Shown here one piece after another: positions 34,401-40,400 of a stretch of 64,000 nucleotides of DNA. This DNA is from Tubulanus polymorphus (lineage: Eukaryota; Animalia; Nemertea). Both the position numbers and the translations under genes were made by a program. The stretch is from contig NC_134035.1 of the NCBI RefSeq assembly GCF_964204645.1, forward strand, positions 1,488,001 to 1,552,000, written 5' to 3'. The notes beneath the pieces were generated by a model, which saw only the letters and a program-made list of their open reading frames with translations, was not told the origin of the DNA and searched no databases. Each line of letters opens with the position of its first letter. The first letter of the stretch is position 1.

Positions 34401-37400
34401 ATGACATTCGAAAAAGATTTTTTTTTTACGGCAAAAATAAAGAGCAGTTATTTATATATACATATTTCATGGTCTAAGACTTCGAGAGGTTGTAAACGAA
34501 CAGGTTCTTTTTAGTTTAAGGCTAAAAAATTGATACCTTGTTTCTCATTTCTGCTGAGCCTTAAATTCGACACAGCTGGCGCCACCTATCTACCCTGTAT
34601 ACATTACTTTGTTCAGATCAGATCAGGCTAACCATAACAGACCCAGCAGCTAAAGAAATGGACTGATTACAAAATTTTATTGCCGTTTACAAAAATGACC
34701 CGGCCGATTAGGAGAAACAAGGTATCATTTTTCTTCAGCCTAAGGCTAAAAGTCTACGACGTCAATAACTTGTTTGAATGAAAGTTTTGAACATTGATTT
34801 ATGCTCATTTTTTTGCCCCTCTGAGCAACGAATACACATAAAGTATACCTGCATTTATACGTTACAAATGCTAAGGGCAGTGACCGATTTGGCTGCGTTT
34901 GAAGATGATTTGAACGAAACATTTCAACTATATACGGATTGTACAACTTGTAAGTAACGAACATTATCATACTCTTAACAAAGGGCTTCGAAAAAGTCAA
35001 CTCTTCGAAAGGTAGCATTTTAAATGAATGATATCGAAATAATTATTGAGCGACGGTATCGGTTAGGCTGTCGGGTTACACTGGATACATTTTGTTTCGA
35101 TCGTTTTAATCATTTTTAAAGAAAACATTGGCACCAGCGTTTTAATCTCCAATTTCAGTGTAACCCAAGCCTGACCGATTAAATATCATCATCTGAAAAA
35201 AATAAATTGCGACGCAATAAAAGCAAGACTAGCGACCAAACCGAGACGTTCACATAGCTTTTTATGTTTATACACTAAATGCCACAGTATAACAGACAAT
35301 CATATACTGTATATAGTCCTTATACATGTACATGTTTATATATATATATATATATATGTATATCATACTTGCCTGTTGATTTTCCCCTAAAACCTTTTTC
35401 GCAGAAAAAACAAAAAACGAAAAAATTGCAAAAATAAACATGTGAAATGTAAGTTGCAGAGAAAAAAGAATAGAGGATGCTGATATCGCGTAGAGCGAAA
35501 AGTAAAGGATATTTGCAGATGTAATGTAAGCATCCTCTCTTGGTGTAAGATTTGATCGGGTTCAAATCAACGCAAGTGAGGATGTTCCACTAGTGCAGAT
35601 GGATGTGTAAAAGGCAAAAGTATTAAGACAATCGAATGTGATAAAAAAAGAGCAAATGTCGTTAAAGACAACATTGTAAAACTAAAATATCTTCTACCCC
35701 TACGGGAGAGGATGTCAATATTCTATCAATGGTGATTATTGCTTTGAAATATATATTGAGCTAATGTAAAAAATAGAAGATCACCACAAAATGTAGCTTA
35801 ATTTTTTTCTGTATTTTTTGGTGGATCGAAAGGAATTGTTACTTGTCATATGATGTCATACATTTAACAATGAATGCAGCCCCTTCCAGCATATGGAGAA
35901 CGCTATGTATTCATGTCTGTGAATATCATTCATCGAATGGTGTTCGTTTTGCATAGCCTTCGCATGATATAGATGCTTAAATACGTCCAGTTGGGAGTGT
36001 GGAAAGATGGAATAAGCAGAATAATAAACAGGACAATTCAAAAGTGCTTTCTGTGAAGCAGCAGAATGCCCTGATTACACCATAAATATGTGATAAACAT
36101 TGAAATAACTATTGGCAGCCCATTCTAAAATTGGGCACCAATTCATTCAGTAATCAGGATTTTCGTCATCTCTTTTCGAGACTTTTGCAACCTAACTATA
36201 CTCGCAACACATGTTTAAGACACAAAACTAAGTGTTAATCCTGTAACTACTTGTAACAAACACTGTTGACTATAGCACGTTTTCTTACAAAAAGGGATAC
36301 AAAACTATATTGACTTTAGAACCCTGATGATGCTACATCTGTGGATATGAAGGGGACTAACTCATATCGAGTTAAGATATTCTATATCTGATTTCAATTA
36401 GAAATTGGGTCATGACAACTTATCAAAGCTGTAGGAGGCAACAGAAACGAAGAAAAAAAGTCTGAAATTGTAATAAACTATAGATGTTTTTTTTGGTTTT
36501 TTCTCTTCAGGTCATCATGACATCAAGGGGGAGCTTGTACCAGCGAATGTTAACGCAGTCGTACAATCACGCCGACCTAAACGTGCTCTACCGAAATCCC
36601 GTCGAATACTTTCTCGACAAACAGATTCCGGTTTGGTTCAGTTGGGATCCGAATCGCGTGCTACTTCACCAGCCGAAACCGGCCGAGACGCTCGCCGATC
36701 TCAAACAGCGAATCAAGTCGGGCGTTCCGAAACACGTTAAAGTCGACGAGTACGACCTTTACTACCTGAGTCGAAACCAGGCGATTCCGGCGCCGCTTAC
36801 GCAATGGACGGTCGACTGGTTCGAAGACATCGCCGTTTTACACATTCCGAAGAAGAAACTAACGTTCAACGTTAAAGTCGAGTATTACAACAAGCACCTT
36901 CTGTTAGAATTGGGTCGAAAGTTTACGATCGAAGCGCGACTCGTCGATTCGGTCGCGCAGCTGAAGCAGAAGATCGCCGAAACGGAAGGATTTCCGATTC
37001 GACAACAGGACCTCGTCTGCGACGAACAATGCCTCAACAATCGCATGCGTTTTTACGAATACACGCTGCCGCAGCCGGCGGAATTGACGTTGATCATACA
37101 GCCGCGTAACGAACTGTCGATACGAGTCGCGACATTCTGGGAACGCGAATACAAGTTTCAAGTCGACGCTTGTTTCACCGTTAACGAAGTAATGGCCGCC
37201 GTGTTGTGGCACGTATTCAACGGCAAACACAGCCGCGCGACCATAACGACCATCCGTAAACTCGTAACGTCGAATCGACTCGGTTTAGAATTCAAAGGTA
37301 AACTGTTGGCTCCGGGATACTGTTTGAATATGTACGACGTCGACATCGAGGACGTCTCCGGCAAAACGAACTTATTCACGTTGAAGATACAAAACGATAC

Positions 37401-40400
37401 GGACAAGCACAACACGATGAAAATCGACGTGCACACCGCCTTCGACGACGACATCGAAGTTCGCGCGTCGCCGGCCGACTCGTGGAGCGTCGTCGCGTTG
37501 AAAATGCTGAATCACCTACACATGCCGGTCGATATGATGAAATTCTTCGCCGGCAACGAATTCAAACCGATGCACGAAGCGATCGGCGTCAAAGACGGCA
37601 ACGGGTACAAAATCCGATTAGAAATCACCGACCTGAACGACATCACCGCCTGGCAAAATCGCGTGCTACGATTCCGCTATCCGAACGGCGTCCGACAATG
37701 GATACATTACAGTATCGGAGAAACAGTGCGTTTACTGAAACTGCAGTTGGAATACTTCGGCTTCGCGAACGCCACGCACTACGACCTCATACTGGGCGAA
37801 TCGTACCTAAGCAACAATCAAAAACTAGCCGAACTGAAAACGCGCGATAAAGACGCCGTCGAGCTCGTCCTCGATAGCTTGTTCCCGGTTTATCGTTTGA
37901 ACGGTAAAATATACGACTCGTTGACCGAGCATCGGCTGCAAACCATCACCGAACTCAACAACGACTTGAAAGGTCGCGAAGTCGACAATCCCAACTGCGT
38001 CATTCTCTACACGGGCAAAGTACTCGAAGACGAACAGATACCGATTCACGATACGTATATAACGATGGGCTCGACATTCTTCCAACAGTATTTACTGAAG
38101 CGTCTGATCGTGCAGATTCGTTGCGGCATCGACCCGATACCGTTCCCGTTGTTCTTTCACGTGCCGGTCTCGATGCAGAAAATACCGGAAACGCTGAAGC
38201 AGCATAAGGAGATATTCATGACGACGCATCCGGTATTATCACAGTTGTTAGCGTGGAGGCTGCAACATCTGGAAGCCGTGTCCACCGGTAATGGTTTTGT
38301 CAAATTGAAGTCACCGCAACTTTTGAAAGAAAGACATGTCTATTTCTCGGAAGGCAACCGACCCGAAGTAACCGACGATGGTCAAGTCGGCCAAAAAGAT
38401 CGATACGCGAAAAAGATGCGATTTCCGAAACTTTTTCCGGCGACGCAAGAGGAAGAAGTTCAACAAAAAGAGGACATCAATAGAAAAGTGGAAAAAAATC
38501 TTCACCTCGGTCGAGAAAAGCGTATCAAAGATTCGAAATCATCGCCGGGTAAACCTTTACCAAAATTAGTGCTCGTCGCGGATGAAGCAAAGAGAAAGTC
38601 GAAGAAAGGCGCGAAATCGCCAAAAATGTTCGACGCTCAGGAGGTAACCGCGAAACCAGTCAAGAAGAAGAAAGGATCGCAGCCAAATTCAGCGAATACA
38701 AGTCGCCCGGATGTTAAATCTGTAATAGACGAAGACAAAGACAGGGAAGAAGGTGCACAAATAACAGATGAGGTTCAGAAAATGAAGCAAAAAGGTACCG
38801 ACGAAGATGACGATGATACTGAAAAAGAAGACAGCAAAACTAGGAAATCAAGTAATCGGGAAACAATCTCGGATAACCAAGACAGAATATCAGATATAAC
38901 GGAAGGTGATAGGCTTAGTAAAGATGAACGAGATGGCGAGGATGCAAATTCTATCGTCAAAGATGATGCTGCGGAAACTGCGAGCACAAGAGAAGAGGCT
39001 ATCAATAAGATTAAACGCGATAAAACGCCGAAGCCAGCTGAAAAACCTGCCAAAACTACAGCTACCAAAGAAAATAAAGAATCATTGACAGTTCCAAGTT
39101 CGGAAAAGATCATTAATACGGACACGAGTAATTCGAAGTCGAAGCCTAAATCAGCATCGAAGAAAAACAACAAGAAGCCACCAGGAACGCCAGCCGTAAA
39201 ACCGCAATCCGGAATGGCGACGACGGCTGCTGCGAGACAAGCGCTCGTCGACGATCTCGACACGATCGAAGAAACCGATTCCGTGATCACGACGTCGGAG
39301 AAAAGCGTCGGCACGCGAGCTACGCCGCACACCGAACGAATCTACGACGTCGAAGTCTCCGATTTCGCCGTTCACCAGTCGACGCGGAAAAAACGCTGGA
39401 TATCGACGCAAACGCAAAAACCGAAATACGACATCGACGAGAGCATTCTCGAAGGCTACGTGCAACTATCGCAGAAACAACTCGAAAAACAGATGATTTC
39501 GCCGTTTTTGTATCGAGCGATGTTGAACTCGCCGCAACGCAAACGAACCGATTCGGCGGACGGCGAGCGTTGGCTCGCGATGCCGAACAGCGTGTGGGAC
39601 GATTCGTACAAGGGTTCCCGCGAACCGACGCCCGTCGGTTTGGAAAGGAATTATCGTCACGGCGAACGCGCGTCGAGACACGCGCGCAGACGTAAAAACA
39701 GTCGGGACGGTGCGTTACGTTTGGACGATACGGCTGATGAATTTCGGCATCCATTCGACGCTGCTCTTAAAAGCGAACAACCGCTGTACGCGGGACGCCA
39801 ACGTAAATTCATCATTACCAACCGGCAAGAAGGGCTGCTCGCGAATATATTGCCTTTTTTGACTGTGAGGAGAGAGAAATCGTACGACGACCCGATGTGG
39901 GATTTTCATCAACCGATCTGGGAACAGTCCGACCGACGCAGAAAAGAGGAACTCATTCTCAGCCAGGTTCAACAGCATCGCGCTCTCGTACAAACTCTCG
40001 AGTTTTACACCCCTCGTAACGCACCGTCGGGGGTCGAACCACAATATTTCTACCAAGCCGTCGAAGTGCCGGCAGTGCCGCCGCCCGATGAAGCAGAATT
40101 ACTAATGATTCAAAGCATTGACGAACCGAAAAAATCCAGATGGCAACAATGGAAAGACAGGCACTCGGCGGACAAGTCTTCGAGTGGAAAAAATACCGGA
40201 AAAATTGTCAAATCGGGACTTTTCTAATGAATCAGTGGTAATTCAGTAAATAATGTCGAAGTATTTATCATTTAAAGATAGCCTAATCTGTTAAGCGAGG
40301 TGGCTTTACTTCTACATGCATGACTATAGTACAATGGCTTATACCACCTGACTAATCAGAAATAGCTCTACGCTGTATACAAATCCAAATCCAACGGAAG

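Follow-up and report, generated by a model that had tools for sequence, protein, structure and literature searches.

A gene nested antisense in a twitchin intron encodes a member of a spiralian six-ubiquitin-fold protein family

What does a 3.7-kb uninterrupted open reading frame (ORF) encode when it lies antisense in an intron of a giant muscle gene, and how did it come to be there? The question is raised by a 64,000-nucleotide stretch of the genome of the nemertean Tubulanus polymorphus (contig NC_134035.1, positions 1,488,001 to 1,552,000; hereafter the window), which carries twitchin on its minus strand and the ORF on its plus strand. An earlier reading of the letters without database searches (the sequence-only reading) had proposed a gene for a tandem ubiquitin-like (UBL) domain protein, perhaps a lineage-specific, possibly retroposed ubiquitin-mimicking scaffold. 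Following up that proposal, we arrived at an interpretation to which we assign a probability of roughly 60%: a single-copy, selectively constrained gene that resides antisense in twitchin and belongs to a spiralian family of six-UBL proteins, derived from polyubiquitin and acting as a non-covalent platform with an attached tail.

The host gene is identified as twitchin by its domains and kinase tail. Pfam detected I-set, fn3 and Pkinase domains on minus-strand exons across the window, with an I-set/fn3 array ending in a C-terminal twitchin-type kinase and autoinhibitory tail, and the piece after the kinase (6497-6799) was closest to the Aplysia twitchin kinase 1KOB (E = 3.5e-15), followed by C. 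elegans twitchin. Both boundaries of the intron that holds the ORF were read directly on the minus strand, with the donor GAG/gtacaaaag at 41337/41336 and the acceptor ttttacag/TATGAC at 32565/32564, confirming the intron coordinates proposed earlier. Inside this intron, the plus-strand frame stays open from 36484 to 40227, corresponding to 1,247 residues from the first ATG or 1,236 residues from the ATG at 36517 (Table 1). The GC content of the ORF is 0.44-0.55 versus 0.29-0.38 in the surrounding intron, and a genome search found a single copy in the 268-Mb assembly. The ORF is a genuine single-copy protein-coding gene, antisense within a twitchin intron; the intact frame, intron boundaries and host-domain matches bear out this part of the sequence-only reading.

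Table 1 Features of the nested gene and its twitchin surroundings, in window positions.
Feature	Position	Strand	Basis
Nested-gene coding sequence	36517..40227	+	1,236 codons and TAA; ORF listing, Pfam, genome search, phmmer, polymorphism
Putative 3' splice site of nested gene (polypyrimidine tract and AG)	36497..36510	+	Sequence read
UBL unit D1 (residues 35-112)	36619..36852	+	Beta-beta-alpha-beta-beta in model; weak profile similarity to D6 (29%, hhalign)
UBL unit D2 (residues 113-197), most ubiquitin-like	36853..37107	+	PF00240, 46.9 bits; VIA Z 12.9, root-mean-square deviation 1.2 Å to Dsk2 UBL
UBL unit D3 (residues 198-294), extra helix	37108..37398	+	Model; hhalign D2-D3 94%; PI3K Ras-binding domain Z 10.8
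UBL unit D4 (residues 297-372)	37405..37632	+	Model; FAT10 N-domain Z 12.6; hhalign D2-D4 64%
UBL unit D5 (residues 380-453)	37654..37875	+	Model; hhalign D2-D5 96.5%; di-ubiquitin and FAT10 matches span residues 300-453
UBL unit D6 (residues 454-527)	37876..38097	+	Model; hhalign D2-D6 95%; sub-threshold PF00240
Predicted cap: beta-hairpin and two helices (residues 528-590), near-invariant W580	38098..38286	+	Model, family alignment
Low-complexity charged tail with basic clusters	38287..40224	+	Composition, basic runs
Conserved tail motif Y-D-D-P-M-W ... P-I-W-E (residues 1122-1135)	39880..39921	+	Shared with relatives
Twitchin intron holding the nested gene	32565..41336	-	8,772 nt; both splice sites read directly
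Twitchin exon downstream of the intron (host orientation)	32426..32564	-	Second half of Ig domain; sequence read
Twitchin exon upstream of the intron (host orientation)	41337..41489 (upper bound approximate)	-	First half of Ig domain; Ig_3/ig matches

The nested protein is built on ubiquitin folds. Its sole Pfam match above threshold was to the ubiquitin family PF00240 (residues 133-194, with 46.9 bits exceeding the gathering threshold of 25.4 bits), and a second PF00240 match at about residues 476-507 remained sub-threshold (20.1 bits). AlphaFold returned a mean predicted local distance difference test (pLDDT) score of 82.5 and a predicted template modelling (pTM) score of 0.82 with a 23-sequence family alignment, compared with a pLDDT of 30.7 for the single sequence. 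The secondary-structure string of the model comprises six consecutive beta-grasp units (residues 35-527), followed by a hairpin and two helices (residues 528-590). In the model, the units display the beta-beta-alpha-beta-beta-beta topology, and the array matches solved UBLs: Foldseek aligned it with linear tetra-ubiquitin over 342 columns (E = 1e-21) and with the five-UBL tail of USP7 over 541-547 columns (E about 1e-14), and an exhaustive VIA structure search yielded single-domain Z scores of 11-13, with units 4 and 5 matching FAT10 and di-ubiquitin. Individual structure matches were obtained for D2, D3, D4 and D5, a profile match only for D6, and D1 was recognized in the model only; the profile comparison, in which the family alignment was cut by unit and the pieces compared with hhalign, related units 2-6 to one another. 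The repeats, about six of them, that had been proposed from the letters thus reappear as six predicted beta-grasp folds in the alignment-based model, with Foldseek, VIA and hhalign in agreement for the units that each of them covers. Template modelling (TM) scores of the whole model to the Foldseek matches were 0.13-0.19, which suggests that no solved chain shares the inter-domain geometry of the model. In the ESM Atlas, shape- and feature-based searches yielded only generic polyubiquitin clusters (TM at most 0.27, scores below 0.9).

A head-to-tail array of this kind might be processed into monomers or conjugated. Polyubiquitin precursors are cleaved at the Arg-Gly-Gly that closes each of their near-identical 76-residue repeats, and a conjugatable UBL modifier needs an exposed C-terminal Gly-Gly or a precursor that is processed to one. 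No Gly-Gly dipeptide occurs anywhere in the 1,236-residue nested protein, its units differ in length (74-97 residues) and sequence, and the cap and 640 residues follow the array. It is therefore neither a ubiquitin precursor nor a conjugatable modifier of the ISG15, FAT10, NEDD8 or SUMO type, as had been concluded before from the missing di-Gly ends. A USP7-type protein, in which a UBL run accompanies a USP catalytic domain, was also rejected, Pfam having found PF00240 only. With polyubiquitin genes of the UBB/UBC type, the nested gene shares head-to-tail folds, repeat spacing and an intronless coding sequence; it differs in its mutually diverged units, the lack of Gly-Gly, the added cap and a 640-residue tail. 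ISG15 and FAT10 likewise consist of directly fused UBLs, two in each, and match units 4 and 5 at Z scores of 11-12.6, but they end in Gly-Gly and are conjugated, in contrast to the six units, missing Gly-Gly and long tail seen here. When the family profile was compared with sequences in the PDB, the gapless alignment passed from unit 2 over a ubiquitin-ubiquitin junction and on to the first strands of unit 3, so the units keep the head-to-tail spacing of ubiquitin itself. Taken together, the comparisons suggest that the array goes back to a polyubiquitin gene whose processing sites were lost.

Such an ancestry invites the idea that the array still works as an uncleavable mimic of linear (Met1-linked) polyubiquitin, a decoy or constitutive scaffold for UBAN, NZF and UIM/UBA receptors or the proteasome. 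Its best structural matches are indeed linear ubiquitin chains (tetra-, tri- and di-ubiquitin) solved in receptor complexes, its unit spacing equals that of head-to-tail ubiquitin and, in the profile alignment, unit 2 is hydrophobic at the positions of ubiquitin I44 and V70. Unit 2 is, however, the only one that scores as ubiquitin in Pfam; the other five have diverged, identity to ubiquitin is 15-26% among the VIA matches, and the family-specific invariant motifs TFWG, D-x-W and GVPNA replace the ubiquitin surface. The pTM value moreover suggests that the units pack together, which would bury receptor patches, and the TM score of the whole model to tetra-ubiquitin is only 0.18. We regard mimicry, the leading alternative, as unlikely. 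Of the ubiquitin-mimicking scaffold in the sequence-only reading, the non-cleavable UBL array stands, with mimicry or scaffolding as a conceivable function.

Relatives were found by a phmmer search of 1.84 billion representative sequences, which gave about 25 colinear, single-stretch matches over residues 23-584 (best E values 4.5e-67 and 7.9e-65), while ordinary polyubiquitins matched unit 2 only, repeatedly. A word-indexed homologue search with the window protein and two family alignments retrieved no relatives, the candidates probably being swamped by ubiquitin words. Members include XP_064634019 from the nemertean Lineus longissimus, KAK3102860 from the bivalve Pinctada imbricata, and XP_076450548, XP_055900308 and XP_046560050 from the gastropods Babylonia areolata, Biomphalaria glabrata and Haliotis rubra, respectively, all annotated as 'uncharacterized' or 'ubiquitin-like domain-containing'. 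Identity to the window protein is 18-28%, lengths range from 557 to 1,454 residues with tails of differing length, and P111, K150, N175 and W208 are invariant in the family alignment. A maximum-likelihood tree resolved three clades, each with 100% bootstrap: the window protein with P0001, its closest database relative, and Lineus (100/100); the molluscs; and a set of seven sequences (98% SH-aLRT), joined with less support by P0011. Colinearity over a module of about 560 residues, shared invariant residues and, as described below, an antisense position in the orthologous twitchin intron unite these proteins. From these alignments, the nested protein is a member of an uncharacterized spiralian family without a named match. 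The earlier impression that its architecture belongs to no named family was right. Its presumed lineage specificity was not, given colinear orthologues from nemerteans, gastropods, a bivalve and the third clade in the same twitchin intron.

The nested arrangement itself recurs among the relatives. In Lineus, a single-exon homologue lies antisense inside a gene for 4,803 residues; in Babylonia, the homologue is antisense inside an I-set gene for 4,731 residues; and in Pinctada, it sits antisense between two I-set/fn3 models that resemble one split twitchin. I-set exons also adjoin the homologue in further contigs, and P0011 and P0035, members of the third clade, share the antisense twitchin position. 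We searched translated minus-strand exon pieces of the window against the homologue loci, of which six were readable. In all six (Lineus, 66% identity; Pinctada, 60%; Babylonia; L005; L007; L008), the host exon encountered first beyond the nested gene was the counterpart of window exon 41337-41489, at 45-66% identity, and in five it was followed, in window order, by the next window exon, the one after that, or both. On the opposite side, the exon at 32426-32564 was matched in Pinctada (47% over 49 residues) and Babylonia (36% over 73 residues). Matching exons on both flanks identify the same intron and, with nemerteans and molluscs sharing it, the host-nested pair predates the split between the two groups. 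The named homologues resemble the window gene in their colinear six-UBL module of about 560 residues, disordered tail and antisense twitchin position, and differ in tail length and, for Babylonia, in a split coding region.

Host-nested gene pairs are known from animal genomes, with a gene on the opposite strand of an intron kept in place for long times, and the twitchin pair is alike in both respects. Literature searches returned no report of a nested gene pair in twitchin. The simplest reason for the frozen position would be that a breakpoint able to move the nested gene also cuts twitchin; a functional coupling with the host is conceivable. In a rival reading, the locus would work chiefly as an antisense transcript that adjusts how twitchin is expressed or spliced, with the protein in a secondary role. 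Conservation of the nesting across phyla would fit this, but the cost of a broken host gene would explain it as well, and a role of the RNA alone would leave unexplained why variation is strongly biased towards synonymous changes (see below) and why a 560-residue module was kept at 18-27% identity while the DNA diverged beyond recognition. We consider it very improbable that the locus acts mainly as an antisense RNA.

Gene structure bears on how the ORF arrived. The putative acceptor pointed out before is present as the tract ttttttctcttcag, which stops at 36510 and lies six bases 5' of the ATG at 36517. Because the first ATG (36484) falls inside this pyrimidine tract, translation more plausibly starts at 36517 within the exon. 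In Lineus, a similar pyrimidine-AG (tattttcag) precedes the ATG by 13 nt, which supports a putative splice acceptor shortly 5' of the start codon in the clade of the window protein and Lineus. The upstream exon implied by the acceptor had been called non-coding, which is not required: the frame is open from 36484 through 36511 and relatives have 86-154 extra N-terminal residues in the phmmer alignments, so the missing exon could be coding. The coding region occupies one exon in the window, in Lineus and in several other contigs, and nearly one exon in Pinctada; the Babylonia areolata orthologue is divided into six coding exons over 9.4 kb (locus L004, 10001-19436). Introns thus appear to have been either gained in gastropods or lost elsewhere.

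An intronless coding sequence with a composition foreign to its intron could also mark an ORF derived from a transposon, a virus or retroposition that landed there. The Pfam scan, however, detected no transposase, reverse transcriptase, integrase or viral domains, the gene is single copy, and a repeat search of the locus found neither terminal repeats nor flanking direct repeats. A retroposed origin, as considered in the sequence-only reading, would further predict traces that we did not find: the genome holds no parent copy, the locus shows no A-run 3' of the stop, and the Babylonia orthologue has introns. Together with the orthologues in the same intron of other phyla, these results led us to reject both retroposition and a transposable-element or viral ORF, and a mobile origin of any kind appears extremely improbable.

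The nested ORF is under selective constraint. For contigs from four public runs of one study, representing other individuals, 28 single-base differences in the ORF were listed, 19 synonymous and 9 nonsynonymous (neutral site ratio 1:3.6), giving a ratio of nonsynonymous to synonymous polymorphism (pN/pS) of about 0.13. Over the whole ORF, the synonymous excess was significant, with a binomial p value of 2e-7 to 4e-4 according to the synonymous share assumed, and it was present in both the array (9 of 11 differences synonymous) and the tail (10 of 17).

Several observations weigh against the proposed interpretation. The contigs of the four runs cover intron and ORF alike and thus look like DNA, not RNA, leaving the window gene without an expression signal. 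In two of the runs (X3 and X4, both of one other sample), an additional T follows 38810, changing GAC GAT GAT to GAT CGA TGA and introducing a stop two codons later. D1 lacks sequence-level support as a UBL, the rigid packing of the array comes from one AlphaFold model built on 23 sequences, and literature searches with the family accessions and multi-UBL terms yielded no paper on the family, its partners, localization or phenotype. The extra T and the missing expression signal would both fit an ORF that is decaying or dispensable, whether a young pseudogene or a gene that this lineage is losing. The reference ORF is nevertheless intact over 3.7 kb, the low pN/pS extends to the tail, a tail motif is conserved with relatives, and a third run of the insertion-bearing sample (X2) lacks the extra T, which is either a segregating truncating allele or a contig error. 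Decay therefore seems a poor explanation with little chance of being correct. The sample with the extra T also carries a 3-base in-frame deletion at 38954.

Transcription is indicated for a relative. P0001 stems from a 4,497-nt contig (L009) of run SRR25726911, which a preprint (10.64898/2026.10.28.762581) describes as a metatranscriptome of a red alga collected in the field. The contig has an Illumina adapter remnant at 1-23, consistent with a transcript 5' end. Stretches resembling untranslated regions flank its coding sequence, with 171 nt 5' of the ATG and 391 nt 3' of the stop. Such an mRNA-like contig in a metatranscriptome suggests that some epibiont animal transcribes a family member.

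Beyond the array lies a fast-evolving tail. This comprises the last 636 residues, with K, S, E, D and R each at 8-11% and basic runs at residues 716, 957, 1057 and 1140, a composition that agrees with the disordered, K/E/D/S-rich region with basic runs described by the sequence-only reading. Apart from one short motif, no significant similarity between this tail and those of relatives emerged from the alignments. The motif begins with Y-D-D-P-M-W at residues 1122-1127; D-[DH]-P-[MLIV]-W is common to P0001, Lineus P0002 and P0011, and a P-x-W variant occurred in 6 of 10 inspected sequences of the mollusc-containing clade. A PP1-type RVxF motif was considered for the tail and dropped, the window protein containing only RHVYF (residue 606) as a fit to the loose pattern, without conservation. 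Members of the third clade (P0006, P0014, P0025, P0035, P0048 and P0050) have in the tail a strongly conserved motif of their own with an invariant F, K-L-S-V-R-F-E-x-P, which bears a loose resemblance to the PP1-docking RVxF site and is missing from the window protein.

These data can be assembled into a tentative history and mode of action. A head-to-tail polyubiquitin gene would have lost its Gly-Gly processing sites and then diverged, leaving six abutting UBLs. In the predicted structure, the N-terminal 590 residues would form six abutting ubiquitin folds and the cap, packed as one rigid body. Neither cut into monomers nor conjugated, the protein would act non-covalently, and by analogy with the five-UBL tail of USP7, the UBL body may serve as a protein-binding platform, with the fast-evolving tail supplying docking motifs and perhaps nuclear targeting. 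The C-terminal region of USP7/HAUSP (HUBL) is likewise a long run of non-conjugatable UBLs and is used as a protein-binding platform; it differs from the nested protein in inter-domain geometry (identity 10-12%, TM 0.13-0.16), and USP7/HAUSP has protease and TRAF domains, neither of which Pfam detected here. A bolder version would hold both that the six UBLs form a fixed superstructure unlike solved or Atlas models, a 'frozen' polyubiquitin, and that the antisense residence is functional, making the pair an ancient unit of muscle regulation in spiralians and the nested gene more than a passive passenger. This combination strikes us as a long shot. If true, functional residence might take the form, for example, of mutually exclusive cell-type expression or of a protein that acts on twitchin or muscle proteostasis.

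Under the more modest interpretation favored here, the locus adds an undescribed family in which a polyubiquitin-like array would have turned into a single non-cleavable six-domain body, conserved in at least two spiralian phyla. Its colinear homologues in Lineus, Pinctada, Babylonia, Haliotis and Biomphalaria, antisense beside orthologous twitchin exons in every readable locus, point to a host-nested pair that has kept its place within a single intron of a giant muscle gene over about half a billion years. The family offers a target for structure determination and interaction screens, and the nesting a test of whether antisense intronic genes are trapped or coupled to host regulation.

Further observations concern the host gene and the flanks of the nested gene. 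The twitchin kinase domain and autoinhibitory tail occupy 6497-10032 on the minus strand, so the window covers most of twitchin, beginning with the N-terminal Ig region and reaching the kinase. At 35588-35981 of the intron, upstream of the nested gene, many contigs break and their summed depth reaches 200-290, up from about 25, which looks like a high-copy repeat. On the 3' side, still within the host intron, two 29-nt direct repeats that are 97% identical lie 49 nt apart at 40929-41006.

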